Below, one piece after another: positions 5,901 to 62,368 of a stretch of 64,000 nucleotides of DNA. Source of the DNA: Oculina patagonica (Eukaryota); assembly GCF_052425735.1 (NCBI RefSeq), contig NC_135759.1, positions 16,182,001-16,246,000 of the forward strand, read 5' to 3'. Numbering within the stretch: the first letter of the stretch is position 1; the number at the start of each line of letters is the position of its first letter. The translations under genes and the position numbers were made by a program. A model generated the notes under the pieces. That model worked only from the letters and a program-made list of their open reading frames with translations, did not search any database and had not been told where the DNA came from.

Positions 5901-8278
5901 CTGACTGATATGCTAGATGTTAAAGGAGATGTATTCAACAACAATCACAGTTAAGATTCCAAAGATCAAACAACTGTTTTTAGAATGCAGTCTAAATCGC
6001 TCTCGAAAAGTGCTTCTTTGCACAAACCCCTCGGTTTCTATTTTAAGTGATTAAGTATAGAAATCACCGGCAACTCAAAATACTCATCCAGTCGCCATTG
6101 ACGGGAGCGATCTGTCTAGACTAGATTGAATGTCAACGCATATGTAAGAAAGCACACCGCGGTGACTATACTGCATTGTCGCTCCGGTTAAAGTCCTTTT
6201 ATATATTTTGATAACTTTGTCAGTTCAAAGTCTACTCAAAGTCCATTCAAAACTCAGGATAGCGCCATAAATAAATACGCAGGTTGTGTAGCGTTTGGCC
6301 GGACTTCGTACGGCAGTTCACAGGTCGGGCCTGGCTTATCAGAAGTTTACTTCTATGTGAGAATATCTTCACTAGATAGTTGCTTTTTGGCGGACTTCGC
6401 CAAAACCTGTTAGTTTCTTACAATAAAACAGTAAGAAAAAGTATCGTAAATCATACTCGTGATGTTTTAAGTTTATCCCAGAGCTGAACTGTATACAGAC
6501 AGAATCACCCTATTGACACATACCCGTGCACATACGTAGATCCCCCAAGTTGTACTCTAGATACTTCCTTTGTATCTGTTACAGTAAACCTCTATAGGTA
6601 CTAAGTACATTTATTTACAATTAACTGAACATTGTTACAGGAAACTTCAATTAAGCCCAGTACGTTTGTGGGAGGTGATTTATGCGGGGAATGTTGTTTA
6701 ACAACATTAGTTTAACTTCCTTAGTTATGCCAGCTTAATTTTGTCTCATTCGTTCTATTAATCATATCTTTCTGAAACATTTTATCTCGTTTTTTGTTAC
6801 ATTTCAATTCATTTCGGATTGAATTTGTTTTTCTTTGATACCAATATTTCAAGCTGCACTCGTGTAAATTACGAAACATAACGTACACAGCTACTGAACG
6901 GAGCACTCAGTTTATCACCAAAAAAAATAAATAGGAAGAAAGTGAAACTGGTTACTGATGAAAATATCTCTCCATAGTAGCCGAGCTCGAGCCCACAGGC
7001 ATTTTTCCGCCTGTATCAACTTTTCGTTTGTTGTTATTTCGTAATCTTGGTAGGGCACGAGCTCTTCGGGCCTGTTTGTGCACTATGTAGGGGAGATCAA
7101 TGAAGCTGACTGTAAAAGACGTTGTATAGAAATGTGTCTTTTCGGCTTATATGTTGCTGTTGCATGCATTTGTGCTTCTCGTTATCGATAGAGTCGTATA
7201 CTAAATGACCTTCCATCTACAGTAATCCATTTTACGTTATCAGAAATACCATACAACACAGTACTGTATTGACTTTCGGCATAGTTTGCGAGTCTCTGTA
7301 ACTCCGGCTATAACTCTGCTATAACCAAATAAACCTAAGGGCTAGTTTCATAGGAAGCATATATTTGGAATGTTTCTACTCCAAGACATTTATGTAACGT
7401 ACAAGGTGGAAAAAGCCGGAATTTTAATATTTATCATCCTTTTCATTCCTTTCAGTGAACTGAAAGGAATGAAAAGCCGACGAAAAAGCTTAACCTACGG
7501 AGTGTTTAATACAAAACAAACTTAGAATTTTGCCACTTAAATTTTAAATTACTTAAATAATCTTCTGCTGATTGATCTTTAGTTCCGCTGTGTCACTGTT
7601 TTTATTTTCATTTCTCAATTATTGTGGTTTTATCCCGGAGTTTTATGAAGCTTTTAATACCGCAAAACCGACCAAAATGTAAATATTTTTATGTTATCAT
7701 GTATCATAAACAGTTCCGGTAAAAGGCCCCCTCTTCTGCTCAACGTCAGTTTACATTCTCATCACGAATGACTGACCCGGTTAACCGACGTACAAACAAT
7801 TTTTACACGTAAACAAAAGGTATCCCTAATATTTTACTTGGACTGTGATCGTGTAAATGGGGTTAAATTGTCCTGAAAGAAGTCTTTAACTGGCGAAAAC
7901 AGCGACTTTGAGAAAGTCTAGGCTTTTATAAATTTCAGTTCACGCCTAGAACGACCGCGTGTCTCAAATCAGTGTTTACATGGACGGTTCTCCGCTGATA
8001 AGCGGCCACACACATGCAGGCGCATACAACGAATTATGCAATAAATCCCCGGCCGTTCATTCATCGAACCACGAGGAGAACATTAACAGGAAACGGAAGG
8101 ATCACAATTCCTACCAGCCAATAGGAATGGTGAAAAGTGTAATCGAATACACCGTAAACAGAGCTAGCATGCAGCAACACTAATATATTGACGGCGATTT
8201 GTTAGACTTGCAGAAACGATGCACAACAACGACACTGGAAGACACGAAGTGTAATAAACCAAACGACAACACTGAAAC

Positions 8279-11200
8279 ATGGAGTTACAAATATATCAAG
8301 TGGCAATTTTATTGACGACGCTGTTTAGCGGATCCGACACAAGGCCTGACGCCTCAAGACAAATTTCAATGAATGGACTGCAATCTGCCGTAAGTCATGA
8401 AGTTGTAAATATTGAAGTTTAACAGGGTCATAGCATAACTGTCTCAGTAGTAAAAGCTGAATGACATGGGTCATGATCGCCTGACATCACGTTAATATAA
8501 TGCTTATAAATTTCTTTAAATCCGATTTAGGAAAATCAGCTACAGGAATACACATCGCCTAGACAAGGAGCGCTCATAAAGCGCCCGCTAGTGGAAAATG
8601 TCCTCAAATCGACGATCGAGAGAAGAGCAGTCCTACAAAGGCTTGAAAGGAGCGGAAAATTACGCAAAGAATTTTTCTTTCCTTCCAAAAAAGGGCCCAT
8701 TGTACAGAAGGGGGAGACAATCATACAGAAGAAATTGGACTATTTGGCCAAGTTCAGTCAGAAAAAAGTACTGAGGCGTCTTCGTCGTTATGCGGCACAA
8801 GGTTCCAAGTGGTCTTCAAGAGACATTACCTGGAATATTGTCGATTGGAGCGTGAAACTGTCTAATAATGACGTTAAGAACACTTTAACAAAAGCATTCA
8901 GGATCTGGGCAGAAGTATCTCCGCTGACATTCCGTTGGGTTGATCCGCCAACCGTTGCTGACATAACCATCAAGTTTGTCACAGGTAAGGAACTTTCCGT
9001 GTGATTCCTGTCCTTATAATACAACCACGTGCAGCGCGCAAATTATTGTGTTGTTGTGAATCCGTGCCGCTTGCCGCCTATTTTCACCTAACCTTAACTG
9101 GAATAGTGATTAGCGGTTTTACCATTTTTCGTAAACCCTTGTCATAGAGCACGTAACAGGACGAAAGGCCAAAAATTCAAAACAGTCAAGTGAACTTTTA
9201 TAATTGTTACATACAAACCGGCTTACGCCTTTTTATTATCATTCATCTTTTGGCACTTTGATATCAACACCTTTGATCGAGAAACACTTAAAACGACGAA
9301 ACGAATATAAACGTTTATGTTCGCTAACTGGAATTTTTTTCAATGGAACGTTAAGTTTTGTTTAATATAAAGCAAAAATATGTTGCTTCTTACAAATCTT
9401 TGTTTGTTGTGGTTTGCCTCGGAGATATCACGAACATGACACAATTTCCGTTCCCAGTGAGACAGCATTCATAACGTTCCCGCCACTAATGAAGGAATAT
9501 CCCGGTTCTGTTTTGAAACCCTAGATTTCCGTTTTATAGCTCCGCCAGAAGCACAAAGCATTCAGTTTCCACGGCTTCTTTTTCAATCATAACATATTCT
9601 CGAGGGTTGCAATACTTTTCTCGTGTTTTCTTTTCAGCTACGCCCCTTTAACAGACCATGCTGTCCCTGCAAATTCTTTCACAGTCGAACACTTTCACGT
9701 TCTCTAATTAAATTTGCCCGCTGAATATTTAATGCAATGATGGCTTCCTGAATACAAGGGTTCTTCTTCCTGAATAGTAATGTATTACACATAAGCGACT
9801 TTATTAGCAGCTAAATCACGAGTACCCCAATGATGTGACCTTGCGCAGCGTATCGTGCTCAAAGCCGGTGTGTTCTCGTCTCCGCCCACTGACTATTTGT
9901 TCAGTTTACGCAACAACACTTCCCTGCGTTGTCTCTGTATAGAATTTGTTTCTTTTTTTGTTTCTCCACGGGAAGTTAACACGGAAACCAGCTCGAGAAA
10001 CCCTTTATAAACACTTATCGACCCAAATAGAATTGGAACGTTTACCAATCCTAGTATATATTTCGTTGGTTAATACTATAAAACCGGAAAGTTTATTTCA
10101 ACAATTTGCCTTGCATGTCTTGTTTCTTTTTCCAAGTCCCACATTGACGTCATCAGCAGGGCTCTAAACTATTCAGTGCTTGGCACTAACTTTGGTTAAA
10201 GAGAGAAAAACACCCAGTATTCATGAGTATTCGAGTCGGCGAAAGTAATTCACGCTACGGTTTACTTAATTAAGTGTTCCGGTATTCGGTAAAGAAAAAA
10301 TCCGCCACTCTATGACGTGCAAACATTCATCCTCTTTTCTCACCCAAAGTAACCTGTAAAATCTCTTCTGGACTGTATGTTGATACTGCCTCATGCCCTC
10401 ATCCCTCGCATTCCCTCACGATTGATTTCATAAGGACCAAGGGTGGCTTGCGTAGACTATAGCGCTACCTGACGTAATAGGGGGGAAGGGGGAGGGGTGG
10501 AAAACGGGACGAAACTAAACCCTCTTTCCGCGGTATTTCACTTGCCTCTGACTCATCTAACTGATCTAACACCTGTAAGTTCAAGTTACAATATTCTACA
10601 CACTGGAAGCTAGATGCAAATTTTACAAGTACAAGGCTCCACTGACAAGATGTTATTTTTCCGAACAAATCTCTTTGTCAAGTCTTAACTTCCACACACT
10701 TAACATCCTTGAGGTATCTGACTCAAATAATGCAACACTATTGCGATTGTAACATTTCCAATTATGTGAAACAGGCGGCGAACTGGCCTGGCCATTTTAT
10801 TTACTATTTTTAGCTAAAGTTTTCCAATTCCTGGCGCCATATAACACGATTGCACACAGACACAGTTCTTATATCGCGACCACATTTTCCGGCTTTGGCT
10901 AAGATTTACTCAAAACTGGCAAATGGTTACTTATTCATTTAGCGATTTTACTCAGACTGAGCCAGTCAATGCTGGATAGGATTCAGGATTGTCAGTTCCT
11001 ATCTCTCTTTTGCACCGAGATGTTTTGCCAAAATCATCCTGGCCCAGCTCCACTTTCTGTTTGTTTCTAAATCCGGTCTATGTAGACGGAAGCAAACATT
11101 TACTATATATAATTAATCGTACAAGTAGCGGAAGCCTAAAGTCTTGGCATGGCCCAACTTAAAACCGCTCCGTCTATAATCAGTGCCTGAGATTCCGTAA

Positions 11201-13584
11201 CAAGTGTTGAATAATGGCGTTTTGCCATCGAATTATTCATTCTTAATCTTGATGTCGAAATTCCTTTCCTTTTTAATTTATTAAAATTCCAATATACAAA
11301 AGACATCTAACCAGGTCCATTGAAGTACTTTACATCCAATTCCGAACAACGAGTTTAGAAAGGTCGAAAAATGGTTGATACTGTTTTTATCGGAACTTAG
11401 ACATTGTTATACAGTGGAACCCCGATATAACGATCTTCGATATAACGATATTCCCGATATAACGATGAATATGTTAGGTCCCGGCAATAGTAAAATGTAT
11501 GGGACGGACCCCCGATATAACGATTCCTCGATATAACGATATAATTTTACTGCCCCCTTGGCATATCGTTATATCGGGGTTCCACTGTATTGCCATTTTG
11601 AAGACGGAAGGACTCACTAAATTCACAAAGAGTATGAGTGATAAACCCACATAAATTGTCAAGCATTGTGACAATATTGACGACGCAAACCTCTTATTTT
11701 TTGTTAGGCAATCCAGTTTGTTCACGGATGAACGTATGGCGGAGTCGATCCTCGTAAAAGTACTGTACCCCAGTAAAAATAACACTTACAAATTGCGAAC
11801 GCTTGTTGCCATCAGCATGATTTCGAGTTTCGGTTGTCTTTTTGCAAGCCGCTATGTCACAAAGAGATTAATAATTGTTGATAAAAAGTAAAGTGTTTTG
11901 ATAAAGGAAAACCAAATAGTTTTCATTCAGCCATAAAAATGTTTCTGGGTTTGTCTTAACTGGCGAGGAATGATTTGAAAGGCGGGCGGCCCCAAGAGGT
12001 TAGAGATATAAGGGGGCTCCCTATATCCCAGTTCATTAAAACCCCGTGTTGGTTGCATTATGTTACCTTCCCATAGGTGGTTCTTCCACTGAGCTATAAT
12101 GGAGACTCAGAGATTGGGCCACAATAAAATTGTTAGCACGACCTTCGTAAAAGCAAAATGAATCGCTCATACTCTATATCTCAAATCTCTCGTTCAATTT
12201 TTTCTGTTAGGAAATCACGGGGACGTGAAGGCTTTTGACGGCCCAGGGAATGCTGTAGCTCACGCTTTCTACCCTGATAACGGAGGAGACATTCACTTTG
12301 ATGACGACGAGAGTTGGACTGAAGACTCTTTACTGCCGGTTGCAGTACATGAGATAGGCCATAGCGTGGGACTGCGCCACTCTAATGTGCCAGGTTCTGT
12401 CATGACTTCATTTACAACCAACTTAAACAGCAAAGTCGTACTATCTGATGACGACGTCAACGGAATCCGCTCAATTTATGGTATGTAACACTTTTGGTTC
12501 CAGCATTATGAAACTAATTACTCGCCGATGTGGAGGCGATTACCTATGTTATTTATCGAGACGTATGGTGAGAACTTCAGAATTAAACTCCTGAGAACTA
12601 ATGAAAATGAAAAGCTCCTTTCACATAAAAGAAAGATACACCCACAATGACCCAGAATTAAAAGAAAAAACAAGCGGTAACCGGTTAATTATTGCTAAAT
12701 TAAAACACGAAAGAAGCACCGAGGAAATTAGAAGAATAAATTTATTGGGTACCTTTGTTGGACCATGAGCTACTGTATGAAACATCTTTTAATACTGAAA
12801 TGGATATCTTTAGAGCGAGACGCCTTATACGATTTCCGAACCTTCGTTTCTTATCAAATCCCTTTCTTGCAGCATCTAAAGGTTGACAAACCATTTTTCT
12901 TTCCGCCAAAGAAATAGTCCTACTATTTTGTCAGGCCATATTTACTGAAAAGTGGTTTTCTGTACTCTCTCTGAAGGTTACTGTAGGCCTACAGTGACTG
13001 CCATTGAATCCTGGATGGGCGATGGAAGAACTTACATTTTCAACGGGGCTAGTTTCTGGCGTCTAAACGATCCAAAAGACGAGAGCGAACGTGGCTACCC
13101 AAAAACAGTCACTCGGTCATGGAAAAATGTTCCAGATGACATCGATGAAGTTTTTCTTTGGGGTCACAACTGGGGTACCTATTTTTTCAAAGGACATGAG
13201 TATTACAAGTATAACGATAGACTCAATGAAGTGGAAACGAGCTTATATCCTAGAAACATCTCGCAAGGATGGCCTGGACTGCCGGCAGATGGAATTGATG
13301 CTGGGTTTACTTGGAGTAATCACGAAAGCTACTTTTTTAAAGATGACCAAGTGTACTTATATGATAACCGCAATGACCAAGTCGACTATAGATACCCCAA
13401 ACCGATTAGTGAGGTATGGCCCGGTCTCCCTAATAACATCGATAGCGCTTTCCGGTGGTATTATGACGGTGTCTCCTACTTCTTCAAAGGTCATTATTAC
13501 TATTGGTGGGATGATCGTAACAAGGTCGCAAAGGGTCCCTTTTTTATCGGCAAAACCGAATGGAAGAACGTATGTAAAGTTTAG
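8279..13584 (+). CDS. Secreted matrix metalloproteinase (M10A matrixin) with hemopexin domain, ~480 aa; exons 8279-8389, 8531-8984, 12211-12480, 12977-13584
   Basis: Signal-peptide-like start [16 protein letters not shown]; furin-type site RRLRR|YAAQGSKW; catalytic motifs HGD..FDGPG..AHAF and HFDDDESWT; zinc motif [11 protein letters not shown]; Met-turn SVMT; hemopexin repeats (GYPK, IDAGF, YFFK, IDSAF) bracketed by Cys. All introns GT-AG with consistent phases 0/1/1. Confidence 0.95.
11412..11587. mobile_element. Tc1/mariner (pogo-type) MITE, TA TSD
   Basis: TA|CAGTGGAACCCCGATATAACG...CGTTATATCGGGGTTCCACTG|TA; internal CGATATAACGA repeats. Confidence 0.9.
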
Positions 13585-13625
13585 GTGAGGTTCTATCTCA
13601 TTTTTAGCCTTTTTTAGGTACCCTG

Positions 13626-14011
13626 AAGGGCTCGAGACTAACGGTAGCCAAATAGCCACAGGCTAGTAGAAATGCAGTTTTGGCTAGTAGGTTCTGGGCT
13701 TTCACTAGCCAAAATGGCTGGTTAAAATTTCAGGAATCTGATTGGAAGTAAACCATGCATCACATCAACTCCGAGAGAACTGAACTCACAAGTACACTGT
13801 CATCACATATAAAATTATGTGGACAAGCTGAAATTACTAAAAAGTAACCTAAAATTAATGATAACAGAGCCAGTTAAGACGGCAAAGTGTCTCTGCCCAA
13901 ACCTAAATTAGCTTGAGAATTCTGGCTAGTAGAAAATTGGTTTTGACTAGTGAAATCAAAGCTGTCACTAACCAATGAGCTAGCTAGCAAGAAAGTTAGT
14001 CTCGAGCCCTG
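13626..14011. mobile_element. hAT-like MITE, 5-bp TSD CCCTG, in the MMP 3' UTR; TIR related to 24905-25654
   Basis: CCCTG|AAGGGCTCGAGACTAAC...GTTAGTCTCGAGCCCTG|CCCTG. Confidence 0.85.
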
Positions 14012-59395: not shown

Positions 59396-59642
59396 AATGA
59401 CTCACAAAAGTTCTACAAAATTTTTACTTTTTTCAATAGTGACTCAACGGATTTCTGCTCATGCTCTGCTTGCGTAGCCGCTGACATGCAGCATCCCGAA
59501 ATTAACTGGTCAGCGGTGTGCGCTTTTTGTTTATTATTTGTTTTAAAAATTTTACAAAGGCGTCTATGTTAGATTTTAGATTTTTCTGGCCAAAAATAGT
59601 TGATGCTTAGCGTTGAATGTTAAGAAAACGAGGTTTGTGATC
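59396..59642. promoter_or_regulatory. Putative bidirectional promoter between PSMD4 and the BTB gene
   Basis: Divergent start codons only 247 bp apart. Confidence 0.7.
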
Positions 59643-62368
59643 ATGGAAAAGCTTTTCGATAAAATCGGGGATCATTTTAACAATCCTGAAATGTCTGACC
59701 GCATTTTGGTCGTCAAGATTCGAAAAGATGGCTGGGAGAAATTGGAAGCCGCCTGGCGAGTTCGAAGCATCACCAAAACTAACTCGCAGGGTGGAAACGA
59801 TGATAGTCTCTCAACAACAAACAGCAATCAACAAGAAAAACCGCAGAATTCAGTGGAAAATGAATCCGTTGTGAGTACAGTTGAGCAAAACTTTAACGAC
59901 GAATCACCACCAACTACTGCCGACGACTCGAGTTCGTTGAGCTTGCCTTCGATTTCAGATTCGAGAACTGTCAGTAGCTTAAGCTGTGATTCAGGGATAG
60001 GCGATGCTTTATCTTCTGAGACAAAAAGAACTGTTAAGAGTAAAAAGAGAGAAGAATCTTGGATCGTAGTCGAGGATCAAGAACAAGAGTCTGGGACAAC
60101 GATGAATTCGGATACTTGCAAGCTTCAGGCGGCAGGCACCTCATCAGATGTAGACTTAGATGTGACTTTCAGCAAGTTGCTTATAGCAGACATTCGCTAT
60201 GCGCATAAAGCTGGGGAAATAGGCCTTACTGCTTCAAATTCCGCGGAGGATGGGGCCTCAGCCGTTTTCTTCTCCCAATCGACAGAAAATAGTATAAAAA
60301 CAAGTGAAGAAGATTTGACACTGGCTGACACAGTTATCAGGGAACATCAGCTGTATGTACACAGCTTTTGGCTGGCTTTGAATAGTTCTTATTTCAGAAG
60401 CCTATTTTTTAGTTCTGGGATGAAAGAAACTAAAGTAAAAAAGGTATGATTGATTTGTAATGAGCAGATCAAATTAGTGATTACAACACCTTACTAGCTC
60501 TCCCTCTCCTGAAAAGGAATCTAGCTACATCCCCCACGTAGATGATACCTCCCAGGGGTATAAAATAGTCCCTGAAAATTCTGACTCCAATCTTTTTGCG
60601 GAGCGGACCCAGGGGGCTTGGGGGGCTTAGCCCCCACAATATTTCCGAAAAAAATAAAGACTTACTAAAAGAAGAGTCCCTACAGCCCCCCACTTCAAGT
60701 GACTATTTAGCCCCCCCTGCCCCCCCCCCCCAATTGGAAAAATGCTCTGTGGTCCCTGACACTGAAATCGAGAAGCTTTTTGTAGGTGCAGCAATTTACA
60801 TAGTAAAGTTCTCCTTTGCTCAAGAACACAGCACAAGGTCCCTTTTCCGGGGGGGGGGGGGTATGAAAGGGGCGGGGATGCTTGTCGTCTCACTGAGGGT
60901 GTAAATTTCAGATTTCTGGTCTCACTTCTAAAGGGTGTTTGGGGCAGAATGCATTATTTTAGCCATAATGGTCTTGTTTACACTGTAGGGTTGCACACGA
61001 AGAAATATACAAATGTAAACTCTATTCATAGTTTTTTGGTATGTTTTAGGGGTCAAGAAAAGCTTGAACCACACCCAAATTGGTCTCTATTAGGGGTTCT
61101 TTTCACAATTTCCAAAGAGCGTCCCCACCCCTTTCATATACATGTAGGAGTCTCCCCCATCCGGGTCACTACTGGCCAGGCTTGGACACAGAACTCTTAA
61201 TCTGGAAGTCATCCAACAAACTTTAAAATTTATACCACACCACTTTGCATTCTGATCGTATGCCAGATACATTTTGAATATATGCAGATCATCAGTAGTT
61301 ATAGTAATTTATTGGTCTTGAAAATGCTTGCCTTTATAACTTGGATATTAGCAGCTTTTAATTTTTGCTTGTCTGGGGAAGTTGCATGCTTGTCATACTT
61401 GCAGTATACTTTTGATGATTTGGTTAGCAGACAACTTTCCAGGGGGGGGGGGGCCTTGCCCAACAGGGCCCTTGATGTATGGACACTTTTTTGAGCCCTC
61501 TATATAGTTACCTTTGAGGCTCAAAACCTAAATATAACATTTAATGTTTGTAATGAACTGAGATCACACTATAACTTTATTGAAACAGGTTGAAATGAAC
61601 ATCAGTGAATCCTTGTCATCAATGTTCTTGCTGTTGATTGAGTCGCTTTATAAGCCTGAAGTTGTCATGACAGAGAGTGTGGAGAATCTTCTTATTCTTA
61701 TGAGGCTTGCTCATGTTTATGATGCAGAGAGCACCCTTAAGACTTGTCAAAAGTAGGATATTATTTTTACCTTCAGATTACCAATGTTGATACATTTTTA
61801 ATACATTGTCACATAATGTATACAAAAGTATGTCATGCAGTCTGACAAGTAATCAGGATAAAAAAAAGTCATCAAATAGGGGATATTGTCTTGGTATATA
61901 CTGTAAATGTACATCTGCACCTTCAAATTCTCAGAACTATGTTGTTTGTATGCCAAGTTTTCAAGAAGTTATTTTTTATTGCTTGTTTTTGGGACAATTC
62001 TGCCAACATACTGTACATGTAACAATGAGGACCGATCAAAGTGATCTGAACTTCTTTAGTGTCCACGATCTGAACTTCCTAACATGAAGAGTCCAGAAAA
62101 TCTGTTATGTAGAAAGAAATTATTTGTTGGCCCACGCGAAATAATTTATATCATCCCTGATGATGCCGTAGAACGGCGAAAGCTAGGAATTTTAAAATAA
62201 GATTAGAATTTTTACAGCAGTATTAGGCCACATTTGTATTTTTATAGTTTAAATAACTCAACAAGCAACTTAGCTAATTGTTGTGGTAAATTTTTCTAGA
62301 CTTCTGGGGTCAGCTGAACTGACAGTAGAGATCTGTGACAAATCGCTGAATATGCAAGAACATGAAAG
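59643..62368 (+). CDS. BTB/POZ protein with split BTB domain (POB1/LRB-like), 3'-incomplete; exons 59643-60443, 61589-61752, 62300-62368, continuing beyond the window
   Basis: FNNPEMSDRILVVKI, then a ~210-aa low-complexity insert, then LYVHSFWLALNSSYFRSLF..GMKE and FLLLIESLY..LMRLAHVYDAE..C. GT-AG junctions are in frame (phases 0, 2, 2). Confidence 0.85.
62020..62267 (+). mobile_element. Probable Penelope-like pseudo-LTR remnant (boundaries approximate)
   Basis: Minimal hammerhead followed by an AT-rich tract ending TTGTATTTTTATAGTTTAAA; no RT or GIY-YIG ORF nearby. Confidence 0.45.
62154..62188 (+). ncRNA. Minimal type I hammerhead ribozyme (Penelope-like element type)
   Basis: TCC-CTGATGA-T-GCCGT-AGA-ACGGC-GAAA-GC-TA-GGA: conserved core, perfect 5-bp stem II, palindromic AGCT mini-stem III, 3-bp stem I TCC/GGA. 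Confidence 0.75.

Follow-up and report, generated by a model that had tools for sequence, protein, structure and literature searches.

A 64,000-nucleotide stretch of the genome of the stony coral Oculina patagonica (contig NC_135759.1, positions 16,182,001 to 16,246,000 of the forward strand; hereafter the window, in which position 1 is the first letter) contains a gene for a matrix metalloproteinase (MMP) whose propeptide is without the cysteine switch on which, by the textbook, MMP latency rests. The gene has four exons (8279-13584, + strand) and a 480-residue product, a model made from the sequence and backed by spliced RNA contigs of three public runs. The data are best explained overall by an expressed and selected clade of switch-less MMPs that would be activated by a convertase and would keep the propeptide as a chaperone and/or a cysteine-independent blocker. 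We put the probability of this reading at about 0.6.

Gene model, transcripts and domains

The gene is real, spliced and expressed. RNA contigs of the three runs were aligned to positions 7800-13750, a comparison at the level of contigs, not of full-length reads. A 1916-nt contig matches the window with 0 mismatches and has its joints at 8389/8531, 8984/12211 and 12480/12977; it skips three introns (8390-8530, 8985-12210 and 12481-12976), all of which are bounded by GT..AG, and the same three joints are found in contigs of two further runs. Since these contigs lack the introns, they must derive from RNA. Exon 2 has only two copies in the genome, both within intron-bearing genes.

The longest contig (X1) is continuous from 7878 through the ATG and crosses an in-frame TGA at 8273, which leaves no room for an upstream coding exon. 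The transcribed 5' leader (7878-8278, + strand) begins at 8216 in contig X2 and at 8206 in contig X7, and the true start site may be nearer 8200. If transcription begins at or above 7878, the leader includes six upstream ATGs between 7980 and 8219, with short upstream open reading frames of up to 67 codons.

Exon 1 (8279-8389, +) provides the start codon, a hydrophobic N-terminus resembling a signal peptide and the first 18 residues of the propeptide; the putative signal-peptide cleavage site lies just before residue 20. After an intron of 141 bp (8390-8530, +), exon 2 encodes propeptide residues 38-123 (8531-8788, +), which end in RRLRR (8774-8788, +), a site of the furin type R-X-[K/R]-R that directly precedes Tyr124, the predicted mature N-terminus (YAAQGSKW). 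The same exon continues into the N-terminal third of the catalytic domain (8789-8984, +; Pfam PF00413 positions 1-57, E 2.4e-10). Intron 2 (8985-12210, +) is 3226 bp long. Exon 3 (12211-12480, +) carries the remainder of the catalytic domain (PF00413 positions 60-158, E 2.3e-30), including the zinc motif at 12348-12380, the structural Zn/Ca site and the Met-turn, and is separated by intron 3 (12481-12976, +; 496 bp) from exon 4 (12977-13584, +), which encodes the four-blade hemopexin domain (PF00045 in four stretches, E 1.1e-32) and ends with a TAG stop codon.

The product is thus a complete MMP of the secreted type, in which a signal-peptide-like N-terminus is followed by a 104-residue propeptide that ends in RRLRR just before Tyr124, by a matrixin catalytic domain and by a hemopexin domain of four blades. 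The Peptidase_M10 matches reach 41 bits for the exon 2 part and 106 bits for the exon 3 part, against a Pfam cut-off of 24. HExxHxxGxxH followed by Ser (at 12348) and a Met-turn reading ...GSVMT define it as a matrixin of MEROPS family M10A, and HExGHxxGxxH occurs only at this one place in a six-frame scan of the window. By direct reading, the ligands of the structural Zn/Ca site are all present (NHGD, AHAF and IHFDDDESW, with DDD..G..SIYG in addition). The four PF00045 repeats, which score above the Pfam cut-off, are closed by one disulfide pair, Cys281 and Cys478 at the two ends of the hemopexin domain, and these are the only two Cys in the 480 residues. The R-L-R-R sequence directly before Tyr124 is the motif expected of a furin-activatable MMP. 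The coral protein has no transmembrane or glycosylphosphatidylinositol tail, and a lookup of exon 2 in the ESM Atlas returned generic matrixin clusters only. The hinge is nearly absent: in ...IRSIYG-Y-Cys281 (exon 3/4 junction, 12470-12990) the two residues G-Y are all that lies between ...SIY and the first hemopexin Cys.

What is missing is the hallmark of the classical matrixin zymogen. Residues 1-123, up to and including RRLRR, contain zero Cys, PRCGxPD is absent from the propeptide, and a motif scan in six frames of the 64-kb window found neither PRCG nor RCGxPD. Pfam gave no match of the propeptide to a PG_binding_1-like prodomain (PF01471) at E <= 1, nor to any other family; in exon 2 only Peptidase_M10 exceeds its cut-off, and it does so in the catalytic residues. 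A Cys-free run of about 100 residues is not rare by chance, and the signal lies in the contrast with relatives, which is taken up below. The propeptide (residues 20-123) has 25 Lys and Arg versus 10 Asp and Glu, with a net charge of +14.8 and an isoelectric point of 11.0, while the net charge of the catalytic domain is -7.7. The preliminary description of the window had proposed this gene model, including the 141-bp intron and the uninterrupted run of exon 2 into the catalytic domain, and had called for a scan for PG_binding_1, reported above; the spliced contigs of all three runs agree with the model, and none of them contains a hidden exon, for which it had seen almost no room, or the PRCG-encoding exon that it had named as a refutation. 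Its reading of a Lys/Arg-rich propeptide without Cys, a furin-type site and intact catalytic and structural motifs likewise holds.

A switch-less coral clade and its genomic setting

A paralog and orthologs from other corals have the trait as well. The paralog, a recent one, lies on the same contig, 7 Mb away (C2:8.80 Mb). Its exon 2, which is 79% identical by BLASTP and 87% by HMMER, is open and contains no Cys, and its protein (P0161, 'hypothetical protein ACROYT_G005033 [Oculina patagonica]') is 89% identical to the window protein. Three full-length, transcript-derived proteins without the switch (P0163, P0164 and P0165) are 65-67% identical to P0161, and XP_020623825.1 (P0292), 'matrix metalloproteinase-16-like [Orbicella faveolata]', is a switch-less ortholog. 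About ten further switch-less fragments at the level of exons show 46-86% identity; two fragments carry one Cys each, at positions that do not correspond. Genomic orthologs in three other assemblies (L009, L071 and L072) have the same exon layout, a conserved signal-peptide exon (69-82% identity over the exon 1 N-terminus) and intact catalytic motifs; L009 and L071 yielded all four exons, and L072 yielded exons 1-3, the stretch retrieved for it ending before exon 4. The N-terminus of the window gene recurs in the NCBI models of both the paralog and the Orbicella ortholog.

In an alignment of 94 MMPs, [RPK]C[GT] is found in 73 of the 75 other rows with a propeptide and in 0 of the 13 rows of the clade. 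The contrast is also seen within the Oculina genome, where all 13 MMP genes with a readable switch region on contigs C6 and C4 have both PRCG[VMLDN]PD and a convertase site; locus L055 on C6 stands outside this count because its open frame starts too near the convertase site. The genome has a greatly enlarged MMP family, for which Peptidase_M10 gave 70 matches at the exon level; the exons with a catalytic site number at least 40 and lie for the most part in tandem arrays (C13:34.25-34.37 Mb, C6:29.18-29.54 Mb and C4:0.64-0.68 Mb). The C6 and C4 copies, which are those read for the switch, have the canonical PRCGxPD; in the C13 array the exons are arranged differently and the propeptide has an exon to itself.

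A maximum-likelihood tree was calculated from the catalytic and hemopexin columns, with the propeptide columns left out. The switch-less proteins form one clade (support 96/88), within which the window protein and its paralog are sisters (100/98). The clade is nested in a cnidarian group (99/100) together with MMPs of the scyphozoans Rhopilema esculentum (XP_065071686.1) and Sanderia malayensis and with Nematostella vectensis P0015. All of these sisters have a furin-type site before the catalytic domain and, unlike the corals, they keep the switch, as LPRCGVED or KPRCGVKD in the jellyfish proteins and as SPRCGVTE in Nematostella; the scyphozoans also retain the prodomain motifs YLxxYGYL and FQxF...L. 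In P0015 ('predicted protein, partial', DS469640.1, L083 5677-6012) the NCBI model is 5'-truncated. The open frame of the locus extends 108 codons further upstream, and SPRCGVTE lies in the same exon, 32 residues before an RVRR site followed by Phe, so that here, as in the coral gene, the propeptide and the start of the catalytic domain share one exon. The scyphozoan proteins share with the coral protein the C-terminal ...WKN(L/V)C(K/F)V and, as YGQC, the near-absent hinge, which is therefore a trait of the cnidarian clade. Because the jellyfish and Nematostella members retain the switch, the ancestral gene had it, and it was lost after the split from the sea anemones. On the sequences compared, the lineage leading to these corals has lost the switch, and its propeptide sequence has been altered past recognition.

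The propeptide is under purifying selection. In pairwise comparisons of the genomic copies by the Nei-Gojobori method, the ratio of nonsynonymous to synonymous substitution rates (dN/dS) was 0.20-0.56 in the propeptide versus 0.12-0.56 in the adjoining catalytic part. It was below 1 in every pair, and the propeptide is therefore selected rather than drifting. Net charges of +15 to +26 were found in all clade propeptides examined, and those of canonical relatives range from 0 to +10. Twelve residues (TSKFNAVRSRKV) that stand immediately ahead of the convertase site in the paralog and in most orthologs are missing from the window copy. The linker before the site (8758-8765) is prone to insertions and deletions; the X7 contig, which bears another organism label, has a 12-nt in-frame insertion at 8760-8763. 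As judged from these alignments, the absence of the switch is a lineage trait and not decay. The preliminary description had suggested an MMP subfamily, which the paralog, the coral orthologs, their grouping in one clade and the purifying selection bear out, and had named a decaying copy beside orthologs with a normal switch as the outcome that would speak against it. The closest orthologs are themselves switch-less, and only distant cnidarian relatives keep the switch.

Two long-branch proteins, P0349 and P0343, are candidate intermediates in the loss. Both start with the MEL(x)IYQVA signal peptide, behind which P0349 is free of Cys and P0343 has a single one, in RKMCPTERSD; no closer copy of either was found in Oculina. 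P0081/P0099/P0111, P0186/P0354 and P0355 are further full-length MMPs of the public collection without a switch-like Cys motif, each with at least 60 residues upstream of a cut point set 80 residues before the zinc motif. This last set suggests that the switch may have been lost repeatedly and independently.

Two repeats adjoin the coding parts of the window gene. Intron 2 contains, at 11396-11603, an element resembling a miniature inverted-repeat transposable element, which is bounded by terminal inverted repeats of 39 nt that are 85% complementary and has CGATATAACGAT repeats in its interior; because its word depth in the RNA contigs is in the thousands, it represents a very abundant, transcribed repeat family. 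A second high-copy repeat (13571-13750, contig depth ~600-1250) lies just 3' of the stop codon and overlaps the 3' untranslated region or flank of the MMP gene. Elsewhere in the window, an open frame of 278 residues (59613-60446, +) gives a weak BTB/POZ match (E 3.8e-4, 21.1 bits versus a cut-off of 20.5) and is probably an exon of a neighbouring gene.

The propeptide and the control of the enzyme

The most conserved part of the propeptide is a motif at residues 81-92 (8660-8695, +). In an alignment of 13 clade members (A3), an F and a K of this motif are invariant and an R, an E and two F are nearly so. The three Arg of RRxRR are also invariant (R109, R112 and R113 of P0161:20-132), and the site aligns with the furin-type site of switch-bearing MMPs. 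This pattern of conservation makes the 81-92 motif a candidate contact or blocking segment. It is possibly the site of the former PRCG as well, a visual suggestion without statistical support, and 'PSKKG = former PRCG' is a visual guess of the same kind. Attempts to place the former PRCG by alignment gave QKKLDY in alignment A1 and KKGP in alignment A2, neither of them reliable.

Sequence homology to canonical prodomains was sought and is not supported. Besides the missing PG_binding_1 match, hhalign aligned the clade with canonical propeptides at a probability of 0.85% over 11 columns, matching LxxTGxL only, and BLASTP between the Oculina and Nematostella propeptides gave E = 17. The equivalence of the coral propeptide to a canonical prodomain rests on position only, that is, on the same exon, a like place after the signal peptide and ahead of the convertase site, and a comparable length.

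AlphaFold2 and Foldseek were run on the 89%-identical paralog P0161 as a proxy for the window protein. The catalytic and hemopexin domains were modelled mostly with a predicted local distance difference test score (pLDDT) above 90. In Foldseek, the catalytic domain of the model aligned with human MMPs at a template modelling (TM) score of 0.87-0.90, a root-mean-square deviation of 1.5-1.9 A and 41-44% identity, and the hemopexin domain aligned with that of MMP-14 at TM 0.86. ProMMP-1 and proMMP-3 aligned with the model over the mature domains only, proMMP-3 over the catalytic domain. In a control prediction of the switch-bearing Rhopilema relative, for which the alignment was much deeper, the prodomain and switch reached pLDDT 87-95; the contrast with the coral propeptide is suggestive only.

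In the reading that we favour, the zymogen would be made with its propeptide attached, and a furin-type proprotein convertase would cut after RRxRR and expose Tyr124, as in membrane-type MMPs (MT-MMPs) and MMP-11, whose mature N-termini resemble Y-A-x-Q-G-S-K-W. Cleavage would occur in the secretory pathway and the enzyme would be released largely active. Latency would then matter during transit only, and selection on the thiol ligand would plausibly be relaxed. The propeptide would be kept as a folding chaperone and/or as a steric or electrostatic blocker that works without cysteine; since it contains no Cys, it provides no thiol-based ligation of the zinc. In the electrostatic variant a propeptide of charge +15 would meet a catalytic domain of charge -8, with the conserved 81-92 core as the likeliest contact. 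The preliminary description had offered two readings, a basic prodomain that masks the acidic active-site region or a constitutively active enzyme, and the data speak neither for nor against either of them.

Several points tell against this reading or fail to back it. Convertase cleavage at RRLRR is predicted from the motif only, and that the propeptide binds or inhibits the catalytic domain is a proposal. The AlphaFold2 pLDDT of the paralog's propeptide is 33-53, so that the occupant of the cleft cannot be read from the model, and a complex prediction of the propeptide with the catalytic domain and zinc scored 0.31 against a mark of 0.34, which says nothing for or against binding. The putative signal peptide lacks a positively charged n-region. 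Finally, a poly-A RNA run of one labelled relative (X22) has no reads on the exons, and expression may therefore be restricted.

Two rival explanations concern the gene itself. A missed exon or an alternative 5' end could encode a normal PRCG propeptide, and the contig-level RNA evidence leaves some space for this, as contig assembly drops rare isoforms. Yet the joints are identical in three independent runs, a single contig reads from 7878 across the ATG without a gap, PRCG occurs in none of the six frames of the window and the NCBI models of the paralog and the Orbicella ortholog share the N-terminus; such an artefact is close to refuted. It is also very improbable that the gene is a decaying copy, drifting since the switch was lost. 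The somewhat shortened catalytic loops and the missing Tyr that usually follows the Met-turn, both noted by direct reading, might be taken as signs of decay, but the same loop features occur throughout the clade, the reading frame is intact in every copy and species, every zinc and calcium ligand is intact, dN/dS is below 1 in each pair and the gene is expressed.

The other rivals concern what the propeptide does. A constitutively active enzyme, with a non-inhibitory propeptide kept for folding, for sorting, for attachment to sulfated glycans of matrix or mucus, or as a separately released cationic peptide, is possible, if on the unlikely side. It fits the missing thiol ligand, the several internal dibasic sites seen by direct reading and a net charge far above that of canonical prodomains. 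It also fits the modelling of the propeptide as loose, low-confidence helices by the pipeline that was confident of the prodomain of the switch-bearing relative, although this low confidence may just reflect an alignment with little depth, some 13 sequences. The purifying selection seen on one particular motif and on length agrees equally well with a defined intramolecular contact, however, and no amphipathic helix was detected in the propeptide beyond that of shuffled sequences (65% of shuffles reach its highest hydrophobic moment, 0.50). A propeptide side chain that caps the catalytic zinc in place of the switch is improbable. The candidates would be Glu84, which is nearly invariant, and Lys90, which is invariant (E62 and K68 in A3), both inside the best-conserved motif, which, counted from the weak LxxTGxL-like match, falls at the place expected of the third prodomain helix and PRCG. 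That match is itself insignificant in the profile-profile comparison (below 1%, 11 columns), the structure predictions do not place the propeptide and so give no support, A3 contains no invariant Asp or His in the propeptide, and lysine ligates zinc poorly at neutral pH. The boldest proposal, that the basic, Cys-free propeptide is a new latency device (an electrostatic or steric clamp, or a Glu/Lys ligand, released by the convertase) or a second bioactive product such as a cationic matrix-binding or antimicrobial peptide, we consider doubtful.

Comparison with known metalloproteinases

The layout of the coral protein is that of MMP-11, MMP-28 and MT1-MMP/MMP-14, with a signal peptide, a propeptide, R-X-[K/R]-R, a Y-A-x-Q-G-x-K-W start, a catalytic domain and a four-blade hemopexin domain. 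It differs from these enzymes in a propeptide without PRCGxPD or any Cys, without a detectable PG_binding_1-like prodomain and far more basic, and in having almost no hinge.

Latency without cysteine is known from the zymogens of karilysin, fragilysin and astacin, in which a conserved Asp sits on the zinc. The coral propeptide differs from these Asp-switch metzincins in having no invariant Asp, only the nearly invariant Glu.

Among MMPs proper, MMP-23 (CA-MMP) has no cysteine-switch motif, and it has no signal sequence, a short pro-domain, and cysteine-rich and Ig-like domains instead of hemopexin (PMC7290392); it is classed as a type II transmembrane MMP (PMC8467561). The coral protein resembles it in the absence of the switch and in the basic convertase site ahead of the catalytic domain, but it has a signal peptide that looks cleavable, some 100 residues of propeptide and a hemopexin domain, and so is not of the MMP-23 type. 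Because it groups with cnidarian MMPs, the loss in corals is independent of that in MMP-23. Some echinoderm MMPs have also been reported to be without the switch (PMC8467561). Like the coral proteins, these are invertebrate enzymes from expanded families, mostly furin-activatable and in some cases switch-less; they belong to a different phylum and are likened to the coral clade by description only.

In the papers searched on cnidarian and coral MMPs and the cysteine switch we found no description of this clade, whose members are named only 'MMP-16-like' or 'hypothetical' in the databases. A claim of novelty has to be modest, since MMPs without a switch had already been described, in MMP-23 and some echinoderms. 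The new element is that the switch was lost independently in a conserved clade of corals whose propeptide is unusually basic, and this is no surprise in kind. As switch-less MMPs are already known and the mechanism is only inferred, the practical gain is modest.

Natural exceptions to the switch nonetheless show what else can control MMPs. The exception found here is no single odd gene; the switch-bearing jellyfish and sea-anemone sisters and the switch-less, expressed clade of reef-building corals form a clean evolutionary before-and-after pair that should be useful to MMP biochemists. In other invertebrates, MMPs have been tied to regeneration and immunity (PMC3566077, PMC3675644). With at least 40 MMP catalytic exons in this coral, whether one clade is secreted already active matters for the reading of expression data.

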